Of a stretch of 64,000 nt of DNA, positions 1 to 50,238 are shown piece by piece. The translations under genes were made by a program, and so were the position numbers. Source of the stretch: Selaginella moellendorffii (lineage: Eukaryota > Plantae > Lycopodiophyta); the NCBI RefSeq assembly GCF_000143415.4, contig NW_003314316.1, positions 1 to 64,000 of the forward strand, in the 5' to 3' direction. Below the pieces are notes generated by a model that had not been told where the DNA came from, ran no database searches, and saw only the letters and a list, made by a program, of their open reading frames with translations. Positions within the stretch are counted from its first letter, which is position 1, and every line of letters begins with the position of its first letter.

Positions 1-410
1 TTTGCTAAATTAATAGAAAATTTAATAAATTAGCTATATTCTTAAAAACTAAATTGCATCAAAGATTTCGACGCCTTTTATCACAAAACAACATATTCCT
101 GTAAGTAAATATTATTCATTTGGAGTAATAACATAGTTATAGCTTCTTTTCATTAATTTGTTTTTCTTAAATTTATTTCAGCTGAAATTAATTTAAGAAA
201 GATTTGCGAAAAAAATGATGTTATTGCTTTGAATAATGATAAACAACATTTTTTGTTGCTTTATTTATTTTTACTATATACAACATGAAAAAAATAATAT
301 TCATTAGAAATTTTGTGTGTAACTCTGTGATAAAAACATTAAAATCTATAATGGAATTTTGTTTTCTGACAATATGACCAATTTATTAATTTTTTTTTAA
401 TATTAGGAAT
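1..410. mobile_element. AT-rich MITE/foldback-like element
   Basis: 1-95 is an imperfect reverse complement of ~315-410; non-coding and AT-rich; left end may lie outside the window. Confidence 0.5.
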
Positions 411-1015
411 AAAATCATAAAATTTCATGCTTTATATTACTTTATTGATACATATGTAGGGAATATTTTTACTTATAAAAAAGTAAATTTCATATTAAAT
501 AAATTAAATACCATAAAACCTTATACAATTTGATAAATTTGTTTTAAAATAAAGTGGAATTGATGTAATCATATATTAGATTTATAATAATGATATATAA
601 TAGTAATATTGCTTTATATTTGAGAATGTTATGATAAATTATATATTGGAATTTTTTCTGTAAACAATTTAGAAGATATATCAAATGTATTTTAAATTAA
701 TTGAAAATGTAAAAAATAGTTTTAAGGAGAAATTTTTATTACTTTTAAGGCATACAAATAATTTAACACTTTTCACTTTAAAAAGCTTCCAACTTTTAAT
801 CTTTCCTCTTTTATTTTAATATAAAGAAAAACTCAATAATTATTATTTCAAGATTGTTAGTACTGTTCTGTTAAGACAAACTCATAATTTTTTATGACTC
901 CTTTAACTTAAATGTATAATAGTTTATATAGCAAACTTAATATGTTAAAAAAAATTCAAATGTAACTTTTTAAAAGAATATTCATAAAACACACAAGCAT
1001 ACAATCACTCCATAG

Positions 1016-4000
1016 GCATTAGTTAGCACAAAGCTAGTTCATGGTCTTCTCCCACCTCTTCTCACACTCTCTTCCCCAAGCTGAACACCACTACCTCTAA
1101 AAGCTGCTATGGTTTGCTGAGAAAATCATCCAGACACAAACTTAAGATAGGCTGTTCTTGAGGATCAAACTCTACCACAAAATCGAACTTCGTGTATAGT
1201 CCCATTTGTCAAGACATTGCAATCAGTGTGCCATCCAAGTCAAGGATCAAAGTCGACTTTGTCATCGTGTTGATCTTCTTCCTATTGGAATATTCCTGTT
1301 ATTGTTCAAGTAAGAAAGTGATTGTAATATAAAATCAGGGTCCACTTCTCGGACAAGATCCCACACAACCACAAGCACATTATACTATATTTTCGCTTTT
1401 AAGAAAAACCTTACCCACCATATCAAGTTCTGCCGGGAAATCCTGTTGAAGTGTTTGGGCGCATATGCATGTTGAGTATTGAAACATGTTCTGATTGCAG
1501 ACCAAGATTTGAGCGTACTGTCACAAGATCCACAATCTACATAATGGCGTCACTTATTGAATCGAAGAGCAAATAAAAGATACGCACCTGAGTAACGGAT
1601 ACGAAACGATGCAAGCTTGGAGTACTGGCTAGTAGCACTATGACTGACAATCTTGTTGTATCTGGGTCAGAAAGCATGTATCAATCTCGATTTGGCAGGT
1701 TGAAAGTCGGCGTGTAGTCATGACCAAAGCCTTCCAAAGTGATGCCTTATTCAAGAATTCCTGCTTGGACAAGCGTACTTAGTACTAAAAGTCGTACCTC
1801 TACATGAAGCAACCATTGTTGGAAGTGCAACAACAATCTTGAGGAACGCCCTTGCTTTCTGTGATTGGAAATACATCAAGCTTCGCTTGTGGACCATCTC
1901 TATGTTTGTAACAAAGAGGGAGTCTTGCTGTTCTTGTTTGCTTTGCGCATTCTTGTCTATAAAGCTGATATAAATTCCTAGATGAGCCTGTAAAAGATTG
2001 AAAAAGCAAAGACAGACCTTACTGGTCACACCAAACATCCTCAAAAGTGCAGCAGGGCCAGGTCTTCCTGGCACCCACTCTTTCTCGCTTTCGCCAATTG
2101 CATAGTCAATCTCGAGTTGCTTAAAAGCAGACAAAAAAATCAAGGTAAGCCGTCTCCTCTGTTTCCATAGAACCCTAAAAACTCCATTTTCCCGCCGAAC
2201 TTCACTGAATCGTGTTGAGGCCGAGATCGGCCGAGCTGCTGCTCTTGATCTGATCCATTGGGCGGCCGATCGTCAGGGAGCGTATCGCGCTACCATTCAT
2301 CGTCCACGATGTCCAGCGGCATCCCCAGGCCAAGCCCTACCGAAGAACCGTGAGGGAGATCTCGCTCTCGGGCTCTCAATTTGATCGCGCCAATGTTTCT
2401 GTATCAGTGTCTTCTTTCTGGAAAATGTACCACATCAGCTACAAGTGCCCGGGAATTCTACGAGGACCTGGAGCGCGGCGAGATCACCACGGTCCTCGAG
2501 GAGGTACCGATCGAGTTATGGAGCTCCTCGAGTGTAAATTTCCAGGAGAATGTAAGGCGCTGCTCGATTGAGCTCCACCGCGCGGCTGGTAGCTCGAGCG
2601 GCACGCCGCGCGTCCTCCGGCAGGATCCCAGCAGGTAGATCCAGTTATCGACGCGAGCGGGATAGAGCATCGTCTCCACCACATCGATCGCATCCTCCAG
2701 GTGTCCCAGCAGATCGATCATACATCCCGCCTTCCAGGTGGTAATCGATCGCCATGGAGTGGGACTCGATTCGCCGCCATGGCTATACACAAAAGATGTC
2801 TGTCCGGGAGGAGCAGCATTTGGCGCGAGAAACCGAGCACTCCTTCTGGGTCGCTGTTTTGGGCGTGCATGTCCAGCATCACGGTCCAGGCCCCAGATCC
2901 AGCTCGGGCATCGCATCGAACAGCCTCTTTGCTCGATGTATGTGCCCGCAAGTGGCATTTGCAGCGAGCATTGCGAGTGAAACCATCGTCCACGAAGCTA
3001 AGCTATGCTCGGCAGCGCTTTTGTCAATACAGCATGCTACTTCTATAGAAAATTCTCAAGTCTATAATGTTGTGATGTAGGTGAAAATACTGTTGACCCA
3101 AGGAGATAGGGACTTTCGAGCTTCTTCGGCATAGTGGGGTTGGTCAAGCATGAAGAGCAGGAGGTTTGTGGAGATAAAGCTCTTGAGCGGCACATAATTT
3201 TGACTTCTTCAACGCTGCAGCATGATCGTCCAGGCCCAAGCCTTTTTTCGTGAAACGCTGAGTTCCACGAGACTTGATCACAAACGGGCATTTGTGAGAA
3301 GACATCGTTTGCTTCGTCGACGAGGCCATGTTTTGCAATTCTTCGCGGCTTTGACACCAGTGCCCGCATTCCATGACACAAGGTTCCAACACGGCATTTT
3401 GTAGAAAACTTCCTTACGCTGATGTAAAGGGTTGCTGCCGTACTTGGCATAAACGCTGGGCAACGCGCTCCATGCCGTCAAAGATGGTGTTTACTTTTTC
3501 AGAATGCCCGTGTTGGGCATTTGCTTCAAGCATAACCGATGTCCGAAGAACACTAAATGCATTTTGTGAAACAGGCTTTTGGCCTCTGTGACGAGCCCTG
3601 GTTTGGCATATGCCGCGAGCATCGCGTTCCACGAGACGAGATTCCTCTCATGTTTCGAAAGTATGCCGCGAGCATGACGTCCCATATTGATTTGGATCAC
3701 AACGCCACGTAGGACCACGTAGGGCTGGATAATGACGTGTCAGAATGAGACCAACTTGGCGTGTCATTGCTGCGGGGCCTTATCGCGTTGTGGAGGATTG
3801 GATTCTTCCATGGAACATCGACAATCTTTTCCACATGAACCTATCACCGCATGAATCTACCACCGAAAAATGCTAAATGGTATGCATGTGTAGTAAGTAG
3901 ATGCTATACATGGGCATTTGATGTGCCTTAAGAAAACCACTTAGTTTTCTAGATCTGGGCTTCTGTTTTTGCAGTGGCGATAGTTTGAAGCGCTCCACGC

Positions 4001-4530
4001 GTGTTTAGGCCGAGCTTGATGTAATTGAGCAAATAGTCCTTGAAGACGACGGGTTTGTAGAGAGCTGGATGGGACGAGCTGGGGGGAAGGAGCAATCGGC
4101 AACGATTTGGCTGGGCCCATGAGCGTCGCGACTGAAATCCGGAGCTTCTCCTTGTTTACCACTGCCCGGTACTCCACGCTATGATATCTTCCATTGCTTA
4201 TGATCACTTACAAAACCAATGATTGGATTCTACTGTTTGCTATTGTTTGCTGTGTTCACGATCTAAAAGTGTGCTAGGAGTGAAAAAAACAATATGACAA
4301 ATGAAAAAAATACATTTATTCCAAACACCTTTGAGCATTAGCATGTTGTGTCTTTAGTTGCATCAATTTTCATTGCAATTTGACCAATTTTTAACATTCT
4401 TTTGAACTGACTTGCTTCATCTATCTTCCCCTAATATTTTCAAACTATGATTCCTAAATGATTAATGCTTGAAATTTGATCTTGGTCTTTTCTACAGTTT
4501 ATTTCTTGCTACAATATGTACAGAGTTAAA
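1016..4530 (-). pseudogene. Mosaic copy 1: FCP1/NIF phosphatase fragment + condensed POLD1 5'-COX5C-PPR block + 2-ODD 3' end
   Basis: 1330-3650 is the reverse complement of 42218-46010 with many deletions and retained introns; 3770-4230 matches 10370-10855 directly; 1120-1270 (-) encodes STLILDLDGTLI. Confidence 0.9.
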
Positions 4531-6014
4531 CAACAGAAAATTTCTGAAACACAGAAAAATCCCAACTCAAACACATAGGTGTGTTACAAATTCTCAAACA
4601 CTTGCTTATGTACTACTTACATTGTCATCCTCCATAACCCATGATCTGATCCTCCATGTTATCATGTACCTCTAAACCTTATACCACAAGTTTTGTTATT
4701 TCCAGCTTTAGGCAGCGGGTAGCCATTAAGTGGTTATACTAGATAGTTTAGAATAACAAGTTGAGAAGTGGTTAGTAATTAGAAGTTAAAAATTTTACTT
4801 AGTGGACTAAGAGAAGTTAATGGTGTTTTCCAGTGAGTTAACAAAAAATGAGGTGAAAGATTAATCTTGAGAAAAGAGTTAAAATAAGTAGTAGAAGAAC
4901 AAAAAATAGGAGCATTAGTAATATTTTCAACTCCAGTTTACTTGGCTTATTTGCTTTTATGGATGCTTTTTCAATTATTTAAGAATTTTTTTTTGTTAAC
5001 TCAAGTTTTTTTTTTCTTCAATAACTCTAAAAGCTTCTTCACCAACTCAAGTCATGAACTAAAGAAAAATCACATATATGAATGTACTTTCAAGGTTGCA
5101 GCCATAATATTATCATCCCTAGTATAAGCCTCTTTTAATTAATCTAACAAATTTAAATAAGTGCCAAAAATATTGAAATAATAATTATTGATTTTTTTCT
5201 TTTAAATAAAAAAGTTACTGTAACCTTCTCAAATACAAAACAATATCACTATTATATATGATTACGTCAATTTCAAATTTATTTTGGAACCAGTTTTAAT
5301 AAAATATTATTTTTATACCATTTATTCTAATTAATTAAAAATATAGTTTTCCATGATAAAACTTATGCTCTAAATATGTATTAATAATAGTATAGAATTT
5401 CATATTTCTTGAAAAAAATTAGAAAACATTTAAGATTAAGTTTTAAATTATAAAACAGCTTTAAAATATAAGTAATAATTTTTCTTTAAAAAATAGTATA
5501 AGAAAATGTAATTTATACATTAAAAATTAAAATATTTATAAAAATTATCATATTTTATATAACGATACAATGTTTAAATAATAAACTTTGTTACTACCTC
5601 TTTTGATGTGGATCCATGCATTTCCACCATCAACAAATCTATTACAATATTATCTTTATTGAAGCACAAGAAACCTTGAAAACTAAAAAGATACACAAAA
5701 AAAATTTAATTATTACAATAACATTTCATGGATTATAATGGTTTTCCAAGTCCTTTTCTTTGGTTTAAAATTATAATTTCAAAATTGATTTAAGTGTTTG
5801 GTAGTTGCATATGAAGTTACAATTGATTTATCAAGATTTTGTAATCAACTGATATTTATGCGATAACTCTGAGTTTTGTTTTAGCTATGGTTATTAACAA
5901 TTTTATTGGTGGTTTTATGAGAGCTTCAGATTTTTCTAGTAATTTGTAATCACTTAACAGAAGGTCCAGATGTTTCACCTAATTTATTGTCAAAGGGGAA
6001 AATGGTGTAAGATT

Positions 6015-6072
6015 TATATATATATATAGACACACACATATATATATATACATACATACATATATATATATT
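6015..6072. repeat. (TA)n/(CA)n microsatellite
   Basis: tatatata...cacacaca...tatata run. Confidence 0.9.
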
Positions 6073-6259
6073 ACCTACCTAGGTAATTTATTAATTATAG
6101 TACTAAAGCATATGGACTGTTCGTTTAGGATTGAATCTGGTCCATCCATTTTTGTTAACCTATTTTTATATCCCGAGCTATAAATTTTACAGTATTTAAT
6201 TTAATTAATTAAAAAATTATCTTACAAACACTCCATAACGATAAATATCAAAATGGTGA

Positions 6260-9200
6260 AAGCATTAGCTAGCACAATCTCCAAATACACCCTTTTCCCC
6301 AGGCTGAACACCAACACCTTTAAAAGCTACTATGGTTTGCTGAGGAAATCATCCAGAAGCAATCCCAAGATGGGCTGTTCTTGAGGATCAAAGTCTACCA
6401 CAAAATCGATGTTCAATTGTAGTCCCGCTTGTCGAGACGTTGCAATCAGTGTGCCGTCCAAGTCAAGGATTAAAGTCAACTTGTACTGGAATATTCCTGT
6501 TATTGTTCAAATGTCAGGAGTGCTCGATCTCTCACGCCAAATGCTGCTCCTCCCGGACAAATATCTTAGGATGCGATCGATGTGGTGGAGACGATGCTCT
6601 ATCCCGCTCGCGTCGATAACTGGATCTGCCTGCTGGGATCCTGCCGGAGGACGCGCGGCGTGCCGCTCCCGCTACTAGCCGCGCGGTGGAGCTCAATCGA
6701 GCAGCGCCTTACATTGTCCTGGAAATTTACACTCAAGGAGCTCCATAACTCGATCGGTACCTCCTCGAGGACCGTGGTGATCTCGCCGCGCTCCAGAGCC
6801 TCGTAGAATTCCCGGGCGCTTGTAGCTGATGTGGTACATTTTCCAGCAAGAAGACACTGATACAGAAACATTGGCGCGATCAAATTGAGAGCCCGAGAGC
6901 GAGATCTCCCTCAGGGTTCTTCGGTAGGGCTTGGCCTGGGGATGCCGCTGGACATCGTGGACGATGAATGGTAGCGCCATACGCTCCCTGAAGATCGGTC
7001 GCTCAATGGTTCAGATCAAGAGCAGCAGCTCGGCCGCCGATCTCGGCCTCAACATGATTCAGTGATCTTCGGGAGTTTTTAGGAAAATGGAGAACCACGT
7101 CAAGGCTTACCTTGATTTTTTCGTCTGCTTTTAAGCAACTCGAGATTGACTATGTGATTGGTGAAAGCGAGAAAGAGTGGGTGCCAGGAAGACCTGGCCC
7201 TGCTGCACTTTTGAGGATGTTTGGTATGACCAGCAAGGTCTGTCTTTACTTTTTCAATCTTTTATAGGCTCATCTAGGAATTTATATCAGCTTTACAGAC
7301 ATGAATGCGCGAAGCAAACAGGAACAGCAAGACTCCCACTTTGTTACAAACATAGAGATGGTCCACAAGCGAAGCTTGATGTATTTCCAATCACAGAGAG
7401 CAAGGGCGTTCCCCAATATTGTTGTTGCACTTCCAACAATGGTTGCTTCCTGTAGAGGTACGACAGGAATTCTTGAATAAGGCATCACTTTGGAAGGCTT
7501 TGGTCATGACTACACGCCGACTTTCAACCTGCCAAATCGAGATTGATACACTGTGACTTTGTCATCTCCATTGTGAAATATTGTGATATGTTCAACACAC
7601 TTTTCTTTGTGCTTTCTGACCCAGATACAACAAGATTGTCAGTCATAGTGCTCCAAGCTTGCATCGTTTCGTATCCGTTATTCAGGTGCGTATCTTTTAT
7701 TTGCTCTTCGATTCAATAAGTGACGCCATTATGTTGATTGGGGATCTTGTGACAGTACGCTCAAATCTTCCTCTGCAATCAGAACATGTTTCAATACTCA
7801 ACATGCATATGCGGCCAAACACTTCAACAGGATTTCCCGACAGAACTTATTGATACTTGGTATGGTGGGTAAAGTTTTTCTTAAAAGCGAAAATATAGTA
7901 CAATGTGCTTGTGATTGTGCAGGATCTTGTCCGAAAAGTGGACCCTAATTTTATATTACAATCACTTTCTTGCTTTTTTGGGCGTGCATGTCCAGCATCA
8001 CGGTCCAGGCCCCAGATCCAGCTCGGGCATCGCATCGAACAGCCTCTTTGCTCGATGTATGTGCCCGGAAGTGGCATTTGCAGCGAGCATTGCGGGCGAA
8101 ACCATCGTCCACGAAGCTAAGCTATGGTCGGCAGCGCTTTTGTTATAGGGACGTTCGAGCTTCTTCGGCATAGCGGGGTTGGAAGCACGAAGAGCAGGAG
8201 GTTTGTGGAGATAAAGCTCTTGAGCGGCACATAGTTTTGGCTTCTGCAACGCTGCAGCATGATCGTCCAGGCCCAAGCCCTTTTTCGTGAAACTCTGAGT
8301 TCCACGAGACATGATCACAAAGGCACATAATTTGGCTTCTTCAACGCTGCAGCATGATCGTCCAAGCCCAAGCCTTTTTTCGTGAAACGCTGAGTTCCAC
8401 GAGACTTGATCACAAACGAGCATTTGTGAGAAGACATCGTTTGCTTCGTCGACGAGGCCATGTTTTGCAATTCTTCGCGGCTTTGACACCAGTGCCCGCA
8501 TTCCATGACACAAGGTTCCAACACGGCATTTTGTTCCTTACGCTGATGTAAAGGGTTGCTGCCGTACTTGGCATAAACGCTGGGCAACGCGCTCCATGAG
8601 ACGAGACCGTGAATCGCCATGCCGTCAAAGATGGTGTTTACTTTTTCAGAATGCCCGTGTTGGGCATTTGCTTCAAGCATAACCGCTAAATGCATTTTGT
8701 GAAACAGGCTTTTGGCCTCTGTGACGAGCCCTGGTTTGGCATATGCCGCGAGCATCGCGTTCCACGAGACGAGATTCCTCTCATGTTTCGAAAGTATGCC
8801 GCGAGCATGACGTCCCATATTGATTTGGATCACAACGCCACGTAGAACCACGTAGGGCTGGATAATGACGTGTCAGAATAAACTTTCGAACTGAGACCAA
8901 CTTGGCATGTCATTGCTGCGGGGCTTTATCGCTTTGTGGAGGATTGGATTCTTCAACATTGACAATCTTTTCCACATGAATCTATCACTGCATGAATCCA
9001 TCACCGAAAATGCTAAATGGTATGCATGTATAGTAGATGCTATACATGAGCATTTGATGTGCCTTAAGAAAACCACTTAGTTTTCTAGATCTGGGCTTCT
9101 GTTTTTGCAGTGGCGATAGTTTGAAGCGCTCCACGCGTGTTTAGGCCGAGCTTGATGTAATTGAGCAAATAGTCCTTGAAGACGACGGGTTTGTAGAGAG

Positions 9201-9670
9201 CTGGATGGGACGAGCTGGGGGGAAGGAGCAATCGGCAACGATTTGGCTGGGCCCATGAGCGTCGCGACTGAAATCCGGAGCTTCTCCTTGTTTACCACTG
9301 CCCGGTACTCCACGCTATGATATCTTCCATTGCTTATGATCACTTACAAAACCAATGATTGGATTCTACCGTTTGTTATTGTTTGCTGTGTTCATGATCT
9401 AAAAGTGTGCTAGGAGTGAAAAAAACAATATGACAAATGAAAAAAATACATTTATTCCAAACACCTTTGAGCATTAGCATGTTGTGTCTTTAGTTGCATC
9501 AATTTTCATTGCAATTTGACCAATTTTTAATATTCTTTTGAACTGACTTGAAGTGCTTCATCTATCTTACCCTAATATTTTCAAACTATGATTCCTAAAT
9601 GATTAATGCTTGAAATTTTATCTTGGTCTTTTCTACAGTTTATTTCTTGCTACAATATGTACAGAGTTAA
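6260..9670. pseudogene. Mosaic copy 2: tandem duplicate of copy 1 with internal inversion
   Basis: 6260-6510 direct to 1016-1309; 6516-7973 inverted relative to 1310-2846; 7974-9670 direct to 2856-4530; local duplication at ~8210-8420. Confidence 0.9.
6340..6485 (-). pseudogene. FCP1/SCP (NIF) HAD-phosphatase gene fragment
   Basis: Translates KLTLILDLDGTLIATSRQAGLQLNIDFVVDFDPQEQPILGLLLDDFLS: DxDxT motif in NIF-like context; no start codon or C-terminus. Confidence 0.65.
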
Positions 9671-10563
9671 ACTTTCAAAAACTAATTGACATAGAAATAT
9701 TCTTTTACTTTTATCTAGTAAAAGTTAAGATGCTGAAAAAAACTTTGAGTTTAAGAACTTCTTTCCATCTTCACTACTTTTTGGTTGACAAACTGTTAGT
9801 ATTTGTGGAAAGTTAAATGCTGCCAAGCTTTTAACATGATCATCCAAGGGGTAAGTAGAAGCAACTATCATAAAACTCATTTTATCACCTTTGCTAGTTG
9901 GTGAGAATTTAAGACTTCTCCAGTCTTGGGTTTAGTTTTCATGCTTTAAGTTATAGTTCACCCTAATTTGCCTTAAGTACCCACCTAACATTTGTCTTTT
10001 TTTCCATGTGTACGGCCAAGGCTCCTCCTGAGGATCATGGGCCCGGAATCAGGGCCCAGGTCGACCAGCCCCAATTGCCTGAAAAAGGCATATAAACATA
10101 GGACCCAGAATTTTCCTATGTACCCCACATGTACCCCCCTTATCACTAGCTCTTCAGAACTAATTTAATGAATCTACAGCAACAACTAAAAAATGGATGG
10201 AATTATTGGGAATTCTGGTCAAATGTATTTTGCTGATGTGGCAATATCCTACATGGCTCTTAACACGTGTCATTATGTTGAATTAAGTGTTTTAGATCAT
10301 GAACGTCCAATTGATCGAAGGCCCGGAATCGATTGGGCCCAGTGAAAATCTGAGCCACTCAAAGAGCGGCTGCAGGGCCTTATCGCTTTGTCTATATCGA
10401 AAAACGTAAAAGATCAGATTGTTCCATGGAACATCGGCATGAATCTTTCATGAATGTATCACCGCATGAATCCATCACCGACACGAAAATGCTAAATGAT
10501 ATGTATGTTTAGTAGATGCCATTCATGGGCATTTTCTGTTCCATATGAAAACCTCCTAATTTT

Positions 10564-11859
10564 CTAGTTCTGGGCTTCTGTTTTTGCAGTGGCGATGGTT
10601 TGAAGAGCTCCACGCGTATTGAGGCCGAGTTTGATGTAATTGAACAAATAGTCTTTGAAGACCACGGGTTTGTAGAGAGCTGGATGGGTTTTGTCGACGA
10701 GCTGGGGAGCAGGAGCAATCGACGATGATTTGGCTGGGCCAATGAGCGTCGCGACTGAAATCCGGAGCTTCTCCTTGTTTACCACTGCCCGGTGCTCCAC
10801 GCTATGGTATCTTCCATTGCTTATGATCTACACAAACAAAACCAATGATTGGATAGGTTCTCTCTACAGTTGCTACTCTTGGGCAGCAAGATCTTTGCAA
10901 CATACCTGGAGCTGATCACCCAGGTTCACGAGAAGGGCCTCTGGAAGCATTTTCACCGTGACCCACTGATGGTCCTTGTGAAACAACTGGAGACCATCGA
11001 CTTGGTTCTGGACGATGACTGTGAGAGCAGTAGCGTCGGAGTGAGCTCCAAGCCCGATTGCCCGATTGGGATCCGGACACGGCGGGTAAAAATTTATGGC
11101 TAGAATCCTCTCGCGTCCCGCCAACTCTTCGTTCAGGTATCCCGCCGGAAGCTCCAAGCTTTCGGTCATAGCTTCCAGTAACACGGACACGAAGTCATTG
11201 ATTCGCCCTCCATACGAATTCACAGCATCTCTACAGAAGAGTCTTTTTTCTTATCAAGGGCAGAAAGACCAAGCTCTTGGATTGGAATGGAAGAGTCTAA
11301 CCTTGGGAGGTGTTCTTTGGCTGGCCAGACACTATCAGCTTCCAGAGCTGACGCTTCAGCGGGGATGCGGAGAACGTCCTTCCACTCAAGGATGACGTCG
11401 CGAGAAGAATCAAAGCTAGTGGAGTAGCGCATGGGCCGGCCGTCAAACACAGTGACAAAGTACTTCATCTTATCCTCCACGGGTACGTCGTAGAAGTGCT
11501 TTGCAGCGTTTCGCATTCCTTGAAGGATATCCTTTGGAACACCATGGTTGATCACCTTCCAGGGAGTAGAATCCAAACACACAAACTTTAGCTCTTATCA
11601 CTTTCACTCCCAGGCACGGAAATCGAGAGCTCACCTGGAAAGCACCCCACTCCCGGCAAGCTTGATCCAGCTCTCGCAGGAATTCTTCCTTTCCACCAGC
11701 AGCAGCGCTACTCGTGAATTCACTCAAGTCGAGCACTGGAATTTGAGCGCCCCCGGTGGCAGCTTGGATCTGGATCTTTTGAGGCTGCACGTACTCTTGT
11801 GGAAGAGATTGGTGAATTTGCAGCTGCTCAATTAGAGCTTGGATGGGCTTTGAAGCCAT
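10564..11859 (-). CDS. 2-oxoglutarate/Fe(II) dioxygenase (DOXC class), 4 exons
   Basis: Exons ~11859-11635, 11555-11302, 11231-10906, 10827-10564; motifs IPVLDL, ACREWGAFQVINHG, NFYPPCP, HSD, HRA, RIS. Confidence 0.95.
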
Positions 11860-12034
11860 CACTCTCTCTTTCTCTTTATCTCTGGGAGCTTCTTAAAGAC
11901 GAATACCAGGTCTTTATAAGAGAGATGTGAACGAGAGAAGAGAAAGAGAGAAAGGAAGAGGGGCGAGCGCGAAGGAGCAAGCGAATTGATAGTGATATGA
12001 TGCCAGCGAATAAACTCTCATTGGTGGAAATGAC

Positions 12035-12185
12035 CACGTGTTTTATATTTTCTTTTTTGTTATTTTGGGATACTATTCACACTTTAGGTCTTTAATCTTA
12101 GGATGAGCCGAGGTTTTAAAATTTCGCCGCAAAAAGGAGAAAAAAAAAACCACACGTGCGCGACGTTAGACATATATAGCACGTG
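12035..12185. promoter_or_regulatory. Three G-boxes (CACGTG) upstream of the 2-ODD
   Basis: CACGTG at 12035, 12153 and 12180; TATA-like CTTATAAA (-) near 11915. Confidence 0.5.
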
Positions 12186-12675
12186 GGTTTATAAAAAATC
12201 AAAGTGAGAGGTGGAATGATCGATCGGGAGTACTCAATGGTCTGACTTACCATTGTCAACGTCATCCCAAATGCTGAATTCAAAAGTGCCAAGCTTTACA
12301 GGTATAAGGTGAGGAAGCACAAGATTGTACAAGCAATACCATCAACATTGTTAAATTAGTATAATTCAGTTATGGTGTATCTGTAACACGATCTAGCACA
12401 CCTCAAAAGATGTATTAAAAACATAAAAGATTATTACTATCATCTCTAGTTAGTCTCTCCCTACACCTTGATTTCAAAACTGATTATTTTGAGACCAATC
12501 CCTTGCTATGATTTAGTTAAATAGTGCTTGCTTGTCCAAACAAAGATGTGGATGTTGCATTCAAGAACAAGGATGATGACATAGATGATGTTTAGTATTG
12601 GGTGTGTGATGAAATTTGCCACATGCATCGTGCAACTGTCAATATCCTCTATTTTATAGGTGGAAAACATGGCAA

Positions 12676-13847
12676 TGTTGAGTAGTGAAACATGTTCTGA
12701 TTGCAGGGCAAGATTTGAGCGTCATCACATTTGGAACCATAGGACGACTACTGTCACAAGATCTGAAATCTACATAATGGCCTCACTTATTGAATCGATG
12801 AGCAAGTAAAAGATACACACCTGAATAACGGATATGAAACGATGCAAGCTTGGAGTACTGGCCAGTAGCACTATGACTGACAATCTTGTTGTATCTGGAT
12901 CAGAAAGCCCAAAGAAAAGTGTGTTGAACATTTCACAATATTTTACAATGAAAATGACAATCAATCTCGATTTGGCCGGTTGAAAGTCGGCGTGTAGTCA
13001 TGACCAAAGCCTTCCAAAGTGATGCCTTATTCAAGAATTCCTGCTTGGAAAAGCGTACTTAGTTTCAGTACTCTACTGGAAGCAATCATTGTTGGAAATG
13101 CAACAACAATCTTGAGGAACGCCCTTGCTTTCTGTGATTGGAAGTACATCAAGCTTCGCTTGTGGACGATCTCTATGTTTGTAACAAAGTGGGAGTCTTG
13201 CTATTCCTGTTCGTGCTTTCTTGTCTGTAAAGCAAGGGTCAAACCTAGAGGTGGTCAATCAAAACACCCTGTAAAAGATTGAAAAAACAAAGACTGACCT
13301 TACTGCGTCACACCAAACATCCTCAAAATTGCAGCAGGGCCAGGTTTTCCTGGCACCCACTCGCTTTCGCCAATCACATAGTCAATCTCGAGTTGCTGAA
13401 AAACTGACAAAAAATCAAGGTGGCGCTTATGCTCGTGTCCTCCAAGAACACAGTTCTCCATAACCCTAAAAACTCCATTTTCCCGCCGAAGATCACTGAA
13501 TCGTGTTGAGGCCGAGCTGCTGCTCTTGATCTGATCCAAGAACACATTGAGCGGACGATCGTTAGGGTGCATATCGCGCTACCATTCATCGTCCACGATG
13601 TCCAGCGGCAAGCCCTACCGAAGAGCCTGGCGCCAAGAATCGTGAGGGAGATCTCGCTCAATTCGATCGCGCCAATGTTTCTGTATCAGTGTCTTCTTGC
13701 TGGAAAATGTACCACATCAGCTACAAGCGCCCGGGAATTCTACGAGGCTCTGGAGTGCGGTGAGATCACCACGGTCCTACCGATCGAGAAGGTTATGGAG
13801 CTCCAGGAGAATGTAAGGCACTGCTCGATCGAGCTCCACTGCGTGGC
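12676..13847 (-). pseudogene. Mosaic copy 3: condensed POLD1 5'-COX5C block
   Basis: Direct similarity to ~1470-2585; reverse complement of ~43660-45865 with a partly different set of deletions. Confidence 0.9.
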
Positions 13848-14732
13848 AATATGGCATAAAAATACTTAGAAAATATAATATCTGGAATTTCCATTTTGTC
13901 TATATATAATGTAATTACCTTCAAACTTCTGAGCATATGCTATCTACAATTAAGCTTTATTATTGAGTTTTCTTGATGATATGGTTAATCTTATGACTTT
14001 AACTTTTAATGATCTTGGTTTATAAGATCCTTCAATTTTGTCTGATTCAACAATTTTTCAATTATAAATGGAAAAGCTACAATAAAATTAGCAAAATTTA
14101 ATCTTAATAAAAATAATTACGAATAAATTAGTAAAAAAAATAGAACTATATCATCAATGCAATTAGAAGAATTTTAGATGATCATATCATAATCACCTAT
14201 ATGTGAAGTAATTCTATTTTCTTTGGGCAATTTATATCGTCTTCAAACAGAAAAAAATATTCTTCTATTAGAATCATTCCAATCGCTCGGTCAAAATGGT
14301 GAAAGTGAAGAGCGTGTCTCCTGATAGAGCACATAAGCACACCCACGAGTTTGATGGAAATTTCATTACCTTCGGCATCTTGCCAAGAGTCGTAGAGGCA
14401 GGCGAATACAAGAGGGCGCTCGTCCTGGAAGTAGATATAATATGGTTGCTTCTTGCTTCCATCTTTCTTCCACTCGTAAAATCTGCAAAAGCGAAGTCGT
14501 GTGTGCAGTAGAAGATATGATATGCTTGTTTTGGTACCCTTCGACGCTCACGAGGCACCGTTTCGCTGGAAGAAGGAAACTTAAACTTAATTTATTTTTT
14601 TAGAATGGATCATTATCTCTAGTTTATTTTGTAATATTTCGAAAAGGAGCCAGCACCAAAAAGGAAAGAACCCTAAATTACAGCAATAATAATTCTTAAA
14701 AGATAGTGATCAGACTGAGGGAAATGAACTGA

Positions 14733-16571
14733 ATGTCTCAAGGGTGCCTGCGCCACCATCTTTCTATAACCCAATCCAAGCATCCAGATTCTTCTCAGCC
14801 AGACAGAGATACTTTTGTTTCAAACAAACTGATCGAGATGTATGGGAAATGTAAATCACCAGAGCAAGCACGCCGGATATTCGACAGCATTACTGTCAAG
14901 GACATGTTCTCATGGAATCTAATGCTGTCAGTGTATTTCAGAAATGACTGCCTTAAAGAAGGAAAAGAGCTTTTTGACAAGATGCCCGGGAGGGATTCCG
15001 TGTCATGGAACACCATGCTGGCGGCCTACAGTGACGAAGGTGATGTGGAAACCACAAAGAAGATGTTCCTCCAAATCCCTAAGCCGGATGTGGTATCATG
15101 GAACTCTCTCTTGTCGGCATATGCCCAAAGCGGGTATCTCCAATATGCGGCGTCAACTTTTGAGAGCATGCCCCAAAGGGACGTGATTTCGTGGAGCTCT
15201 TTGTTGGCGGGGTATGCACAACATGGGTCTTTGGCTAGAGCGGTCCAGATCTTTCACGAAATTCCGGAACGGAATCTCGTGGCGTGGACGGCCCTGATTT
15301 CCGTGTACGCCCAGCACGGGCATCTGGAGGAGGCAAAGCGGGTTTTCTGCGAGATGCCACAGCGCAACCTGGTGACGTGGACGTCTATGCTTGTAGCTTT
15401 CTCAGGAAACGGGCAGCTGGAGGAATGTGAGAAGATATTTCACTCCATGCCGCAGTGGGACGTGGTTTCCTGGAACTCGCTACTGTCGGCATATGCCCAG
15501 AATGGGCATCTTGGATACGCTTTGGGTATCTTTGCCACGATGCCTTTTCGGGACGTGGTGACGTGGAACGCTATGCTGAATGCTCACACTAGAGCCGGGC
15601 AAGCGGAGACAACCAAGAAAATCTTTGACTCTATGCCAGTCAGGAACCTTCTGTCGTGGAATCTGGTGCTGTCGGTGACTGCCCAGCAAGGGGATCTGGA
15701 AGATGTAAAAAATATCTTCAATGAGATGCCTCAAAAAGATCTTGTAGCTTGGAATGCTATGATATCAGCCCTGCTACAAAGGTGGCGGCTGGAGGAAGCC
15801 AAATCCTTGTTTGAGAGAATGCCGCAGCCCAACCTCGTTTCGTGGAACGCTATGCTTGCCGCTTATGCCCAACACGGGCATATCCGCGAGGCGGAGTGCA
15901 CTTATAGCCAGATGCCCGAGAGAGATTTAGTGTCCTGGACTTCGATGCTTGCTGCCTATGCTCAACACGGGCATCTCTGTCATTGTTGGGAAATATTTGG
16001 TAGCATCCCTGAGCGGGATCTTCTATGCTGGAACACGATGATCTTTGCTTACTCTCACAATGGCCATCTCCACCGAGCTAGAGCACTCTATGATCGTTTG
16101 CCCGAGTGGGATTCGGGCTCGTGGAGCTCACTCGTCGCCGCTTACGCTGAGAACAGGCACTGGGACGAGGCATTTAGTCTCTTCTTCGTTGGGAACCTTG
16201 TGGATCTGCCAGACGAGAGATGCTTGGCCGCTGTTTTGGTTGCTTGTACTCATGCAGGGACTGTTTTCTCTGCCAGGAGCTGCTTTGTTTCGATGAGTTT
16301 TGACCATGGGCAAGAGCCGACGAGGCAGCACTTGGTTTGCATGGTTGATCTCTTGGCGAGAGCTGGTTACCTCAGAGATGCGGAGGATTTGATCCAGAGC
16401 ATGCCTTATGTTCCAGACGTATTCGAGTGGACATGCCTTCTTGGTGCTTGTAGAAGTTACAAGGACTTCAAGTATGGAGCTAATGCTGCTTCTCGTGTTG
16501 TGGCACTCGAGCCTAGAAACGCGGCTGCTTATGTATTGCTTGCTAATGTAGCCTCTCCGCAAAAAAGTTAA
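14733..16571 (+). CDS. PLS-class PPR protein with E domain, no DYW
   Basis: 612-aa intronless ORF; tandem MP.RD.VSWN.ML.AYAQ.GH repeats; CMVDLLARAG...WTCLLGAC...AYVLLAN. Confidence 0.95.
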   Translation: MSQGCLRHHLSITQSKHPDSSQPDRDTFVSNKLIEMYGKCKSPEQARRIFDSITVKDMFSWNLMLSVYFRNDCLKEGKELFDKMPGRDSVSWNTMLAAYSDEGDVETTKKMFLQIPKPDVVSWNSLLSAYAQSGYLQYAASTFESMPQRDVISWSSLLAGYAQHGSLARAVQIFHEIPERNLVAWTALISVYAQHGHLEEAKRVFCEMPQRNLVTWTSMLVAFSGNGQLEECEKIFHSMPQWDVVSWNSLLSAYAQNGHLGYALGIFATMPFRDVVTWNAMLNAHTRAGQAETTKKIFDSMPVRNLLSWNLVLSVTAQQGDLEDVKNIFNEMPQKDLVAWNAMISALLQRWRLEEAKSLFERMPQPNLVSWNAMLAAYAQHGHIREAECTYSQMPERDLVSWTSMLAAYAQHGHLCHCWEIFGSIPERDLLCWNTMIFAYSHNGHLHRARALYDRLPEWDSGSWSSLVAAYAENRHWDEAFSLFFVGNLVDLPDERCLAAVLVACTHAGTVFSARSCFVSMSFDHGQEPTRQHLVCMVDLLARAGYLRDAEDLIQSMPYVPDVFEWTCLLGACRSYKDFKYGANAASRVVALEPRNAAAYVLLANVASPQKS

Positions 16572-16915
16572 ATAAGTTAACAATGTTTTCTTTTATGTTT
16601 TGTGTAGTATCACTAAACTAAACAGCTTTTAGATATTCCACTTTTTCTTACGAGCTGAGTTTTGTAAGGCTGCCAAAGCACAGCTTTTCTTGTCTGGATG
16701 TTTCAAAATTGAGTGGCCTCTACAGCTTCCATCTTTCCAGGATTAAAGCTTTCGCTTCACATAAATTTCAAGCACCATCACCACCCACCACCAGCACGAC
16801 AGGGACCTCTTTATTCCGATGTGACGAAGAAGAATTTAAGCCTGGAAAGATGATCGCTTTGCGAGACTGCGAGCTTTTTACATATTGTAGACTTGGAGAT
16901 GAGAACGATTCAGGA

Positions 16916-18492
16916 TCACGGGGATCTGTAGGAGTGGGAGTCTTGCCGGCGGAGAGGGATTTGCTCTGACATTTCTTCGTCATCTGGTCGTTTGACAGAG
17001 GGAAATCCATTGTAAATGGCTGCAAGACAAACCTGGATAAGGAAAAAAAACCAGAGATCCAGTCGTCATACCTCCCTTGAACGAAGGTAGCGCTGGAACT
17101 GGTTCGCAGTGATCCTTTGTGACGTGGAGCAAGTATGTTCCAGCGAGAATGGTGACGAAGCCGCAAAGCTCAGTGACGACTTGCGCAGGAGTTTGTCTGT
17201 CCCAGTCCTGGACAAACCAAATAAGTATAAAAAATGGTGGTTCCTTGGCGAAGTAGTAAACAGAAAGAACGAACCTTGAACATGATGACGCTAGCTACGA
17301 TTGTCAAGGAGGTAAACATGACATAGTAAATGGGAGATACAACTGCAGTATTAAAAGTATCTAACGCCTGCAAGGAAAACCTTGTATGAGCAACGGCAAA
17401 GAAACAAGGAAAGAAATGAAAATGACCGAGTTACCCTGTTCAGATAATTCATCTGTGTTATGACACAGGTCGCAAGCACCATTGCGAACACCCATGTCTG
17501 TGGATACATTAATTGATTGATACCTTCGAATGTCAGTTTGAGGGCAATCCCGAGAGCCTTGGCACTCATCACCTGATAGAATCAATCCATGAGGACCAAA
17601 GCAAACTTGTTGTCATCCAAAGCGCTTACCGACAGTGATCCCATAAACGAACAGATACCAATGTAGACCAGTATCTGCGTGTGCCCATACTGAGGTACGT
17701 AGAGGAAAATAAGAATCAACACCACGGCTACGACAGAGGTCGCATACAGCAAAAACGCTGGAGAAAGAAACAAAAAACTAATGAATCAAAGGCCTAGAAA
17801 GGAGGGAAAGATTTACCAGGCTCGCTCGCTAGATCCCAAACTTGCTTCACCGATTCAATATCACGTTCCCCAGGAGCATGCAAGACAATAGTCGTAGAAC
17901 CCACGACACAAAGAGCACAGCCGAGCATTCCCAGAACATGTAGCTTCTCCTTAAGAATGACATGCGCCAATGCTGCACTGTAAAAAAACAGCCTCAAACT
18001 GTAAGAAATCCATCTTCACGCTTTATCCTCCACTCACCTTACTATAATACTCAAAGCTCCTAAAGGCGTGACAAGTATCGCAGGAGCAAACGCATACGCT
18101 GCAAAGTTTGCAACCTCGCCAAATATCACTGCTCAAAGAAGTGAGCAAACTTTGTTATTTCGCATTTTCATCCTGGACAAACTAGCTTACTTGTGATCAT
18201 GCCTGCCCACCAAAGCGGTTCATACAGATAGGAGTAGCCCCCAACACCTACAAAAACACGAAAAAGCTGTGACTAGAGCACGACATTGCAACAAAAAAAA
18301 AAAAAAAAAAAAGAATTTAAAACCATGCCTACCAGCACGAACTCCAGATGCACCAGCTCTCTTAAGCCCTTTCTTCTTGATGATAAAACTCGCTCCAATG
18401 AAGAGGCTGGATGAGAGAGCCAACACCAGTCCCTTGTGATTATCCGTCGTGACGGCCATTGCTGGATCCTGCGCAGCAGTAGCCTGTGCCAT
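16916..18492 (-). CDS. NIPA-family magnesium transporter, multi-exon
   Basis: [57 protein letters not shown]-terminal IPLRRQDS. Confidence 0.93.
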
Positions 18493-18907
18493 CGAAAATC
18501 CGCGACCCTGCGCTACAAATCACTGATCCCTGAGCTGGGAGAAGGCCTTGCGCATCCAATCCGGCTCAAAATCTCGCAGCTGACATACATTCTCGGCGTG
18601 CGCCACACCTTCCCGAGAATTAGGTCGACCGCCTACCAGTGCTCCATTTCCCAGCGCCTCGCGGGATCGACGAATTCCTGCCGGTGGCGAGCTAGGGCTC
18701 TTGACAAGGACGTGGAAGCCGAGCGAAGATAGAGAGAAAACTTGGATCAGACCCTTTCGCTGTCCCTAAAATGTGTTCTTGCGAATATGCCCTGAGTTGA
18801 ATTATTTTAACGTTTTGAGACGCCAGTTTTGCCCTAGCTCTAGCTCGCCCAGCGATGGAGCGATCGATTGTGGCGCTGGTGGCTCGCGGCGGTGGCGTGT
18901 GACGAGA

Positions 18908-21900
18908 ATGGAGGTGTGTTTCTTGCTCTTCCTGCCCTAGGTATTGATCGATCGCGCAGGTGAGGAACGAGAAATATAGCGCTTGCTTGCGCCGGGGCAA
19001 GATTACGGTCGTGCGCCTCCAACAGGGCAAGGATCGCAAGCTCCATTGGACGTTTCCGAGCGGCGGGGGCGCCAGCGATGCCAGCTGCGTGGAGATCGCG
19101 CTTGATTTCTTGATCTATGGGACAAAGAATGGGGATATCGTGCATTATCTTCTTGAAGAAGATGCCCCGCTGCTTTCAACGACGTTTCATCACTCGCAAG
19201 GCATCAAAAGGTTGGGATTCTTGTCTTGCTGCTGAAAATGGTCTTTAGATCTTTTTTTGTCCATCTCTCTATTTTCTCTGATTCTTTTTCCTGCGTGTAG
19301 GCTGTGGGTTAATGTCATTGGGACACGAGTGATACTTGAGGACGAAATGGAGCATCTCTTTGTCTACAATCCTGTTTCGCAAGAGGTTCTTATCGTTTTC
19401 TGGTGGCTTTGACGGGATGAGTAAAACTTGCAGACATCCTTGATAAGCGAGACTGACAATCCGGACAACGTGCTGTGGGATTCCGATGATTCGAATGTAG
19501 TGGTGATTTCTAAAGGCCATGAAGACATGGTTTTTATCTATTCCAGTGCGAGTGTCTCACCGAAGCTTATGTTCGTAGGCTTGTCAACGACAAGGCCTGT
19601 TGGATTTGTTCCTTTGGCACTCCAGAACGGAGTTTTGACGAGCCAGGTAACTGCATGTTTGTTCATCGAGGTTTCTTATTCCTGAGTTGTGTAGCAGGGG
19701 AGTGCTCCTGTAGAAGAAGTAATTCTTGAAACACACAAGTGGATCAAGGTGAAGACGCCTACCAACTAATGACTTCCTGTTTTAAAAATGTCTGCAGGGG
19801 CGAGTTGAAAGCCAAGCTGAGAGAAGGATGAGATTTGATCAAAACATTGCTCTGTTCCATTTCAAGGAGGCGTGGAATGATGCGATTGTTTTAAATGAGA
19901 AAGAGGTACTGCTCTGTTGCTGAATGCTCCATGACGGTGTATGTCAGGTGTGGGACGCTTTAGCGAAACAGGCGCTGGAGCAGATGGATCTGGATTTAGC
20001 TTTAAAAGCTTGCCAGCAAGCAAAGGACGTGAAGATGCAAATGCTTTTACGTCCTTTGGAACACATTGAAGATAAATATTTATTCGCTGGTCATGTAATG
20101 ACAATATTTGGAGAGCATGATACAGCACAGGTACAGAGTGTGTCCAGCGAATTCTAGTGAGCGCGCAAATCCAATTAAACTTTGACAGGATTATTTTTTG
20201 AAATCTATACATCCGCAATCTGCAGTGGATCTACGAATGAGCCTACAACAATGGGATCGGGTAAGGAAGCCTGATCTTTGATCTCATCGTCCTTTTCTTT
20301 TAGGCGTTGCCACTAGCTGTTCAACTGGATTCGCCTTCAATCCATGATATAAAGTGGCACTATGCTAAGTGGCTTGAACGGAAAGGCGAATATCGTCAAT
20401 CAGTAATGCATTATCAAGATACTCTGAAAGTGTGCCTTCCCGACACACCTCGTTACTCTCAAGCAAAGGTGTAGTCTTTGATGATATTTTATCTCGTCCG
20501 TCAACCTGTCTTGTTCAGGCCGGCCTAGCACGGGCACTTATTCACGTTGGTGACATTTGGAAGGGAAAGCAGTTGGCAATAGAGTGCAATGATACGCGCC
20601 TTTTTGGCGAATGCGCAAAGATTCTCGAAGGCTTGAACTTATTACAGGTATTTCTTCTGCTATTATCTCCCGGTCAGTTTCACTATCTGATGTCGCTAGG
20701 ATGCTGCAGAACTATATGAGATGGGTAAACAACCTCAGAAGGCCACAAGGCTATACATTGCAGCCAGAAACTACTCAAAGGCTTGCTTGCTTTTGAGGGA
20801 GCTAGATAGCTTAATGTTTTACAACGAAGTAAGCTGAAGCAACACAAGAAGTTCACTACTTACATTGGTATGGCTAGTATGGGAGAGCTATGGAGGGGGA
20901 ACGAAAATATTCTGATGCATCAGCTGCATATGAAGCGGGAGAGGTGAGCATATTCGAATTACAGTGCATGTTTAACGCTTGCTCTTACTCGCAGGATTTT
21001 GAAAACGTAGTTCGGCTGGAATTAGGACCACTAAATAACCCCTCGAGAGCTTATTCTGTGGTGTATGAGGTAATCTTTCATCGAACTTGAGTTCTCCGAC
21101 TATAAGATTTACACAGACTAAGTCCATTTCCGGAGCATTTCTAGCTGCGAAGTTCTGCAAGGGAAATGGAGATTACGATCGAGCTATTGAATTTTTTATC
21201 ATGGCAAAAAGGTAATATATTATTCTTTGGGGGCATCTTTCTGCAGTATCAGCTTAATCCGGACAGTAGAAGGGACGAAGCTCGGGAGCTGGCTCAACTT
21301 CATGGTAAAATGGATGTATACACCGGACTCGTGGTCGATATAGCGTCAACTGAAGAACGTTTGACACTTGCCAAGTTAAGCTTCAATTTCCATGTTATTT
21401 CTGATCTGTGAACTTCCTTTATCCGATGGTCAGGTACTACGAATCCACGGGAAACTACACACAAGCTGGCTTACTGTTCGAACGTTGCAATGAAACAAAG
21501 AAAGCTCTTAACTTGTACCTTCAATGGGGTTCGCCTGAAGGAATTGATCAGGTAATGAGGATTATTTTAATGTATCAAGGTTAAAGCTCTTTGCTTCAGG
21601 CCATAGCAATGGTTGGGCGTCTTAAATCCGAGGAACTTATCTCGCAATTGTTTGATTTCCTGACGGATGCCACAAGAGCGGAAAAAACACAGAAACATTT
21701 GCAGCGCTTGCACACGGTCCTTGGGCATTACGAGCAGGCCACAAAAGCTGCCAGATTGATTGCTGACCAAGAGAGGGTGAGTAGAAGTGAGCTGTGAATA
21801 GTCATGTCTCTGATCATTGTTATCGTAAAAAAGGAAGCAGGCAATTATAGGAGCGGGCATCAACTTCTACTGGATTACTGTAGAACACTTCAAGATCACG

Positions 21901-22707
21901 GAAAGCAAGTGCCTAGTGAACTCCTTAGACAACTCATGCTTCTTCATTCCTACATTCTTGTAAAAACGTTAATCCGTCTTGAAAATCACAGGTTTGGCCC
22001 TGCTTAACTTTTTCCTTAATTCATTTGTTTCGTGATACATTGTTTGCTCTTCAGATTAAGTGCTCGCATGCTCATCCGCATAGTGAAAAACATTTCGATG
22101 TTTCCTGCTCACGTAGTTCAGATTCTCACATCGGCCGTTATCGAGTGTCAACGTTCAGGCCTGAAAAAATCCGCTTTCGATTATGCTTCCATGCTAATGA
22201 ATCCGGAGTACAGGTATTATTTGCTTTTGTTTTGGGAATCACGTGATTGACTTTCGATTCAGGCAGATGATTGCTCCTGCGTACAAACGAAAGATCGAAA
22301 AAATAGTACGCAAGCCGGAAAAGGTTGAAGACGAGGAGCCTCTGTCTCCATGCCCCGTGTGTTCGCTACCTATACCAGAAACGCAACTTGACTGTCCGGC
22401 TTGTGGAAGCAACATCCCTGTGAGTGCTGGCGTTTTGGAATTTTTGCCTCAATCCCTCTGTCTGTGCAGTTTTGTATAGTTTCTGGTCGGCATATGGTGT
22501 TGGAAGATTGGACAACATGCCCCAGCTGCAAGTTCCCCGCTCTCATGTCTGAGTTCTTAAAGGTCATATCCAAACATTATGATTCAAACACAGGTGTAGT
22601 AACTTCTTTAACTACAGATGCTGGAAGTAGAGAAGACATGTCCTATGTGCAGTCAACCCGTTGCTGAAGAGGACCTGGTGCTTGTAAATCCGGATTTGAA
22701 GAAGTGA
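18908..22707 (+). CDS. IFT144: Intraflagellar transport protein 144 / WDR19, multi-exon, apparently lacking the N-terminal propeller; start uncertain
   Basis: [56 protein letters not shown]-terminal [21 protein letters not shown] zinc ribbons. Confidence 0.9.
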
Positions 22708-43766: not shown

Positions 43767-44068
43767 TCAATTCTCTTCCAGGAGCTCCATGACCTTCTCG
43801 ATCGGTACCTCCTCGACCTTCTTGATAACCGTGGTGATCTCGCCGCGCTCCAGAGCCTCGTAAAATTCCCGGACACGGCGCTTGTAGCTGATGTGGTACA
43901 TTTTCCAGCAAGAAGCCACTAATCGAGAGGAATGTTCGTGAGAAAGCCTTGGCGCGATCGAATTGAGATACCTGAGAGGCCCAGAGCGAGGCCGTAGAAG
44001 ATCTCCCTCACGATGCTTGGCGGCCTCCTAGCCGTGGCTGCCGCGGCAGTGGCGACTTTAGAAGCCAT
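43767..44068 (-). CDS. COX5C: Cytochrome c oxidase subunit 5c, 2 exons (absent from ORF track)
   Basis: MASKVATAAAATARRPPSIVREIFYGLALGLS|VASCWKMYHISYKRRVREFYEALERGEITTV...; GT-AG intron 43919-43971. Confidence 0.88.
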
Positions 44069-44451: not shown

Positions 44452-44463
44452 TTGGCGGGAAAA
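44452..44463 (-). promoter_or_regulatory. E2F site in the POLD1 promoter
   Basis: TTTTCCCGCCAA on the minus strand about 20 nt before the ATG, followed by a telo-box-like TTAGGGTT. Confidence 0.65.
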
Positions 44464-49284: not shown

Positions 49285-49509
49285 AACATAGAAGGCTTTT
49301 CCATCTTGGACATCTCTATCAGATGTAAGGTTTCCAAGTAGAGGGGATTCATGCCTCTGAAGATATACTATAGCAGCAATCAGCAAGCTCATGACTCGGG
49401 AATATATAATGAAACATTTTCCAGTCTTTATTTATATGAAAAAATCGTTCTGCTTTCTTTCACAACACATCTTATTATGTTGAATCCATGGAACACAACA
49501 TGAAACTTT

Positions 49510-50138: not shown

Positions 50139-50238
50139 NNNNNNNNNNNNNNNNNNNNNNNNNNNNNNNNNNNNNNNNNNNNNNNNNNNNNNNNNNNNNN
50201 NNNNNNNNNNNNNNNNNNNNNNNNNNNNNNNNNNNNNN
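50139..50238. other. Assembly gap
   Basis: Run of about 100 N. Confidence 1.

Follow-up and report, generated by a model that had tools for sequence, protein, structure and literature searches.

A haplotype-variable, internally inverted duplication of POLD1, COX5C and PPR gene fragments in Selaginella moellendorffii, probably a duplication scar and not a dedicated RNA gene

Does an inverted repeat assembled from pieces of protein-coding genes mark a locus that silences those genes through hairpin-derived small RNAs, or is it what local duplication and repair happen to leave behind? The question is raised by the first 8 kb of a 1.34-Mb scaffold of Selaginella moellendorffii (assembly GCA_000143415.2), the first 64,000 nucleotides of which (GL377620.1:1-64000, hereafter the window) were analysed here. 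An inversion inside one of two duplicated gene-fragment blocks has created an inverted repeat of about 1.45 kb that carries sequence of POLD1 (the DNA polymerase delta catalytic subunit gene), COX5C, a PPR gene and a promoter. A sequence-only reading had proposed these arms as a multi-target source of hairpin-derived small interfering RNAs (siRNAs). The analysis presented below points instead to a duplication scar that varies between haplotypes, an old inversion having by chance come to face a paralogous copy; the locus is probably a side product of duplication and repair in place and no dedicated RNA gene.

The architecture was established by repeat finding and self-BLAST, which recovered both the inverted arms and the direct flanks. 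The inverted repeats occupy 1308-2846 (arm 1) and 6512-7975 (arm 2), with the end of arm 1 placed at 2696 or 2846 and the start of arm 2 at 6512 or 6568. They lie within two direct copies, copy 1 (1064-4531) and copy 2 (6287-9672), which enclose the oppositely oriented arms and whose flanks correspond in direct orientation on either side (1064-1307 with 6287-6511, and 2847-4531 with 7976-9672). Self-BLAST and alignment thus agree with the earlier claim that the middle of copy 2 is flipped between direct flanks, and the coordinates given at that time were good to a few bases. Global alignment of the arms yielded 1390 aligned bases at 95.0% identity with nine indel events, and perfect runs of at least 21 bases between them add up to 980 bases. 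The spacer, previously put at about 3.7 kb, measures 3665 bases at 35% G+C. The inversion junctions are clean and reciprocal (1307|1308 and about 2846|2847 in copy 1). A third copy (12709-13778) is direct relative to copy 1 and, as had also been noted, inverted relative to arm 2, at about 81% identity by self-BLAST. An assembly gap at the junctions can be dismissed: the sole run of N in the window, at 50139-50238, is distant from them.

Each unit is a mosaic of a HAD-like hydrolase piece, the POLD1/COX5C/PPR block and a 2OG-oxygenase piece. In copy 1, the left direct flank (1064-1307, minus strand) is a dead HAD-like hydrolase fragment with a DLDGT motif and an internal stop, with weaker homology to copy 2 reaching left to about 1000. 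Arm 1 follows, collinear with the donor in reverse orientation, and contains fragments of POLD1 exons 2-8 with introns (minus strand), a promoter remnant with an E2F-like 10-mer at 2187-2196, a plus-strand COX5C remnant that has lost its ATG and, again on the minus strand, the 3'-terminal part of the PPR gene. The direct-repeat part then holds a further PPR fragment with internal deletions (2847-3648, minus strand; donor 43330 to 42218) and a 2OG-Fe(II) oxygenase fragment (3801-4228, minus strand). The latter takes in the final exon, some intron sequence and the 3' flank, and matches 10417-10854 at 86% identity. The unique A+T-rich part of the spacer (4532-6222) is CpG-depleted, carries AATAAA and ATTAAA motifs on both strands and has no counterpart in the other haplotype. 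Copy 2 comprises a HAD-like left flank (6287-6511, minus strand; 86.5% identical to 1064-1307), the flipped arm 2 in donor-gene orientation, and a direct-repeat part (7976-9672, minus strand) with a PPR fragment and a 2OG-oxygenase fragment (8975-9364), about 98% identical to copy 1. The PPR fragment of copy 2, unlike that of copy 1, contains a 95-bp tandem duplication (8226-8416; two copies, 92% identity). Copy 3, older and partial, retains POLD1 fragments, a promoter remnant and a COX5C remnant.

The source of the copied block lies on the opposite strand, running from 46008 down to 42218, and matches the copies at 81-92% identity by self-BLAST. It spans an intronless PLS-type PPR gene of 622 codons (41848-43716, plus strand), the 82-codon COX5C gene (43767-44068, minus strand; exon 1 44068-43972, exon 2 43918-43767) and, head-to-head with the latter, the beginning of POLD1 (44482-49330, plus strand, with approximate exon bounds), so that the arms do hold sequence of three genes 30-40 kb away together with their shared promoter, as had been claimed. 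That promoter contains an E2F-like 10-mer (44454-44463, minus strand) ending 18 bp upstream of the POLD1 ATG. Within the window the 10-mer TTTTCCCGCC occurs only at 2187, 13478 and 44454 (minus strand), against a chance expectation of 0.1, which bears out the earlier statement that the E2F site is retained in copies 1 and 3; in copy 2 it has been removed by a 10-bp deletion. The 2OG fragments of copies 1 and 2 have their parent in a neighbouring, apparently intact four-exon 2OG-Fe(II) oxygenase gene (10560-11862, minus strand).

The copies are decayed segmental-duplicate mosaics, made at the DNA level, with introns kept, reading frames destroyed and several donors joined without transposon termini. 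Of POLD1 they contain only the 5' leader and exons 2-8 (up to 46008), and a four-way alignment of the donor with copies 1, 2 and 3 shows that POLD1 intron sequence is kept, which identifies them as DNA-level copies and excludes an origin as retrocopies. All three copies share the same deletions relative to the donor, which have removed, among other sequence, the start codon of COX5C and almost the whole first exon of POLD1, and the PPR fragment has lost its first approximately 370 bp as well as internal segments; the donor open reading frames (ORFs) appear intact. In the same alignment divergence is 4.75% between copies 1 and 2 and 11-15% between copies and donor, and the site patterns give the tree (donor,(copy 3,(copy 1,copy 2))). 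Because copy 1 and the donor run collinear through the right breakpoint, it is copy 2 that carries the derived, flipped state.

Evidence that the inversion is not peculiar to a single scaffold came from the 2OG oxygenase, exon 3 of which retrieved a protein 94% identical whose gene lies on GL377624.1. The corresponding locus (GL377624.1:93403-114716, hereafter L003) has the same gene neighbours as the window, namely an IFT-like gene, NIPA, a 534-residue PPR model and the 2OG oxygenase, and substitution divergence between the scaffolds is 1.76% over window 13730-22000 and 2.3% over 9725-12700. The S. moellendorffii assembly is described as two haplotypes of about 106 Mb that are about 98.5% similar (PMC7801247), a figure that the measured divergence fits, and L003 is treated here as the other haplotype. 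GL377624.1 aligns as one collinear piece with window 6582-8587, straight across the right junction at 7975, and its own right junction is less eroded than that of copy 2. The flipped arrangement thus occurs in two scaffolds that were assembled separately, which shows the inversion to be real and, judged from this alignment, old.

The other haplotype carries a single copy, cA, flipped like copy 2. Its order is a sequence related to window 221-1260 (the left flank of copy 1), a 520-bp unrelated insert, the flipped arm, the fragments of the PPR and 2OG genes and, finally, the equivalent of the window from 9725 onwards. Scaffold alignment located no counterpart of the direct arm of copy 1 or of the spacer at the GL377624.1 locus, so the inverted repeat of copies 1 and 2 is confined to the haplotype of the window, and the only inverted pairing left on the other haplotype is a weak one between the flipped arm and copy 3. 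A second structural difference between the haplotypes affects copy 3 itself, which lacks about 500 bp on GL377624.1 (window 13234-13729, the promoter and COX5C remnants). At the left margin, GL377620.1 ends 220 bp to the left of position 221, where the other haplotype runs on with unrelated sequence. A 107-residue gene model of the Joint Genome Institute (JGI) lies inside the flipped arm of the other haplotype (L003 14556-14937, plus strand), just downstream of a retained E2F-like 10-mer (L003 14459-14468); it is probably a prediction built on the COX5C remnant.

The relationships among the three copies change along the unit. In the arm, copy 2 and cA are sisters, sharing 16 derived sites and four identical indels, with distances of 3.9% between copy 2 and cA, 5.1% between copies 1 and 2 and 6.6% between copy 1 and cA. 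In the direct-repeat part (2847-4531, 7976-9672 and the corresponding part of cA) copies 1 and 2 pair instead: they differ by 2.1%, against 7.5% for copy 2 and cA and 8.0% for copy 1 and cA, and cA is the odd one out at 92 sites. Copies 1 and 2 are 14% diverged where the unit begins on the left, and their divergence declines to about 1% on the right. The discordant trees indicate gene conversion. The arms are in fact more diverged than the right flank (68 of 1388 against 32 of 1565 sites, 5.0% against 2.0%, p = 2e-5), which rules out that they have been kept alike by selection or conversion.

The history that would account for these observations begins with a block of PPR, COX5C and 5' POLD1 sequence being copied at the DNA level to a place some 30-40 kb away and then eroded by many deletions. 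Fragments of a HAD-like gene and of the 2OG-oxygenase gene next to it would have become attached to the block, and the composite unit recopied, giving rise to copy 3 and afterwards to copies 1 and 2. A two-break inversion in the lineage of copy 2 would then have turned 1.46 kb, before the haplotypes of the sequenced plant diverged. Gene conversion may later have overwritten the direct-repeat part of copy 2 with that of copy 1, the inverted part escaping, and the other haplotype would retain the flipped copy only, copy 1 having either been lost there or been kept only here. This order of events and the mechanism of repair are what we infer from the present-day sequences. Long double-stranded RNA would arise only if one transcript crossed both arms and the 3.67-kb A+T-rich spacer, an event that is presumably rare or absent, and any small RNAs from the arms would be incidental.

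How far the arms could nevertheless serve as a hairpin is a matter of pairing, targets and transcription. A hairpin is feasible in that the arms would pair strongly if co-transcribed: their predicted co-fold, with 1334 intermolecular pairs, has an energy of -2645.5 kcal/mol and thereby gains about -1747 kcal/mol over the arms folded apart. They show the high complementarity that endogenous inverted-repeat siRNA (endoIR-siRNA) and long hairpin loci need, and also the near-perfect 21-mer complementarity to target mRNAs that trans-acting hairpins need; the compact short-loop fold-back of a proto-MIRNA is absent, the arms being separated by the full length of the spacer. Perfect 21-mers common to arm and donor region number 82-86 per arm and are mostly exonic (45-47 in POLD1 exons, 14-34 in COX5C and 0-7 in the donor PPR gene). 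Within three mismatches, the arm 21-mers that match POLD1 exons rise to 297-319 of about 1450-1520 (about 20%), those matching COX5C to 71-74 and those matching the donor PPR gene to 106-170. Every arm 21-mer differs at more than three positions from the window's three other PPR genes, a result that rules against the silencing of related PPR genes.

Several features speak against a working hairpin. The sole promoter remnant lies inside arm 1, so that a transcript starting from it would hold only about 500 bp of that arm (COX5C and PPR sequence). The spacer contains poly(A)-like motifs on both strands (three AATAAA and five ATTAAA on the plus strand, eight and five on the minus strand) and, on its minus strand, a copy of the 3' end of the 2OG gene. 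The CpG observed/expected ratio is 0.88-0.93 in the arms, compared with 0.42 in the spacer and 0.24-0.43 in the 58-64 kb stretch that served as a within-window contrast, and C-to-T changes along the branches of copies 1 and 2 affect 5 of 88 CpG sites against 7 of 334 other C/G sites, a weak and non-significant excess of about 2.7-fold. With the arms undepleted and the CpG excess this weak, they do not resemble long-methylated repeats, and methylation-driven decay of the arms leaves no clear signal in either measure. Searches for known RNAs and products were negative: no Rfam family reaches its gathering score anywhere in the window; three ORFs within or beside the arms have no record or close relative in public assemblies, which says little either way; exact-product look-ups returned no record for the PPR ORFs, the UGT ORF, the junction-spanning ORF or the copy 1 ORF; and a large protein search with the PPR-fragment ORF of copy 2 found no near-identical protein, an outcome that is little informative.

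Among the alternatives to a duplication scar, those that assign the locus a product in small RNAs deserve the closest attention. Low-level transcription could yield endoIR-siRNAs whose action would be mostly in cis, against the copies themselves, and which would affect the donors little or not at all and serve no selected role. The strong predicted pairing, the position of the locus among expressed-type genes, the promoter remnant of copy 1, the JGI model inside the flipped arm of the other haplotype and the standing of endoIR-siRNAs as a recognised class (PMC10827316) all speak for such incidental siRNAs, but a long A+T-rich spacer with poly(A)-like motifs on both strands, a promoter remnant internal to arm 1, arms without CpG decay and a host for which the literature reports no DCL2, no clear 24-nt class and missing CHH methylation make them rather unlikely. 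The sequence-only reading went further, in proposing small RNAs against POLD1, COX5C and related PPR transcripts; a hairpin selected to tune these transcripts in trans appears highly improbable. POLD1 and COX5C are housekeeping genes, whose constitutive silencing would be costly, and their ORFs, like that of the donor PPR gene, appear intact. The perfect and near-perfect 21-mers shared with the donor genes are what such a hairpin would need, and the account of PMC10827316, which cites Allen et al. (2004), accepts that plant hairpin loci can originate when a target gene is duplicated in inverted orientation; against this, partner arm copy 1 is missing from the other haplotype, the arms have diverged as neutral DNA would and resemble each other no more closely than the direct flanks do, and none of the other PPR genes of the window is within reach. 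The segregating version of the idea, in which a hemizygous hairpin would be diced by DCL4/DCL1/DCL3 and its siRNAs would damp POLD1 and COX5C in trans as a multi-gene silencer that differs between haplotypes, likewise merits very little credence. A hairpin function of the arms is thus unlikely on present sequence grounds, and the indirect evidence leans against a dedicated silencing locus.

The remaining alternatives concern how the structure came to be where it is. An assembly error at the scaffold end would mean that the linkage of copy 1, spacer and copy 2 is artificial and that no real inverted repeat exists on any chromosome. This linkage is observed in this scaffold only, copy 1 lies within 4.5 kb of scaffold position 1, the other haplotype has a single copy, and the right parts of copies 1 and 2 are 98% alike, near allelic divergence; even so, such an error would be surprising, as copies 1 and 2 and cA all differ from one another, with arm distances of 5.1%, 6.6% and 3.9%, from which it follows that at least one haplotype must hold two copies, and the sequence is unbroken, with no N before 50139. 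The outer flanks of copies 1 and 2 are unrelated, which, with the three distinct sequences, rules out alleles stacked in tandem. Equally slight is the chance that the mosaic units are cargo of a gene-capturing transposon, a Pack-MULE or Helitron, that transposed locally. Each unit does join fragments of at least three unrelated gene regions, and a weak, collinear, A+T-rich inverted similarity flanks copy 1 (546-864 against 5160-5284, 76-82%), which an older rearrangement or a transposon end could have left behind. The sharp ends of copies 1 and 2, however, lack terminal inverted repeats, target-site duplications and Helitron-type ends; no inverted pair flanks copy 2; no transposase ORF was seen nearby; and for two of the three donors the distance is no more than 45 kb, which local repair-associated copying would lead one to expect. 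With no more than weak outside similarity at copy 1 and none at copy 2, capture by either type of element was rejected.

The duplication-scar reading has to accommodate several points that weigh against it. The arms are long, are 95% identical and include 980 bases in perfect runs of 21 or more, and copy 1 retains the E2F-like promoter motif. Transcribed inverted repeats yield endoIR-siRNAs in angiosperms (PMC10827316), and S. moellendorffii possesses DCL1, DCL3 and DCL4 (PMC5569507). On the left side, window 221-1063 and the reverse complement of L003 4787-5620 differ by 15.8%, compared with 1.8-2.3% in neighbouring allelic sequence, a divergence that simple loss of copy 1 by unequal crossing-over does not explain.

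Comparison with known systems helps to place the locus. It has much in common with duplication scars attributed to the repair of double-strand breaks by template switching or with filler DNA. Like them, it consists of copies that were made at the DNA level and keep introns, it combines fragments of several genes of the vicinity, its junctions are clean and show no transposon ends, it has been eroded by numerous deletions and was duplicated and inverted again in place, and it differs between haplotypes. It departs from them in that the inversion puts two copies in a hairpin-capable layout, and such a repair origin is for this locus a proposed one. At young MIRNA genes and at maize Mu killer, the arms are transcribed as one unit and have a demonstrated effect on their target. 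As in Mu killer and in young MIRNA genes (Allen et al. 2004), the arms repeat genomic sequences in inverted orientation and keep stretches of perfect 21-nt identity to them, but here they derive from three genes at 81-92% identity and no promoter stands upstream of the first arm. The endoIR-siRNA loci IR71 and IR2039 of Arabidopsis share with the present one long imperfect inverted arms on one chromosome, which would give kilobase-scale double-stranded RNA if transcribed by RNA polymerase II, and that route requires no RNA-dependent RNA polymerase (PMC10827316). The present locus differs in its 3.67-kb A+T-rich loop, in arms made of gene fragments and not of non-coding or transposon DNA, and in its restriction to one haplotype.

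Elsewhere in the window, four further features were recorded. An uninterrupted 612-codon PLS-PPR ORF occupies 14733-16571, where public annotation gives 534 residues starting at 14838 with 129 bp removed as an intron; a large protein search with 14733-16568 found no near-identical protein, again a little-informative result. An intronless 367-codon ORF at 23185-24288 (minus strand) encodes a microbial-type terpene synthase domain (PF19086) among ordinary plant genes. Just downstream of POLD1, a tandem array with a period of about 30 bp (49500-50140; about 80% identity between units) runs into the 100-N gap and reads as His/Thr/Ser-rich or Gly-rich depending on the frame. Finally, 58001-64000 combines strong CpG depletion (0.24-0.43) with an excess of TG/CA, consistent with long-methylated DNA.

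For S. moellendorffii, the unit offers a natural example of how gene conversion homogenises direct repeats and how an inversion shields the adjacent segment from it. Were the hairpin active, it would represent an early-vascular-plant case of gene-fragment inverted repeats giving rise to trans-acting small RNAs, and the presence or absence of one arm between haplotypes would provide a ready genetic test. The locus also cautions against taking hairpin-shaped repeats of this kind in S. moellendorffii for silencing loci unless RNA data say so. Its present value is descriptive: it is a well-resolved set of dead patchwork copies of neighbouring genes, shaped by duplication, inversion, conversion and loss and not the same on the two haplotypes of one plant.

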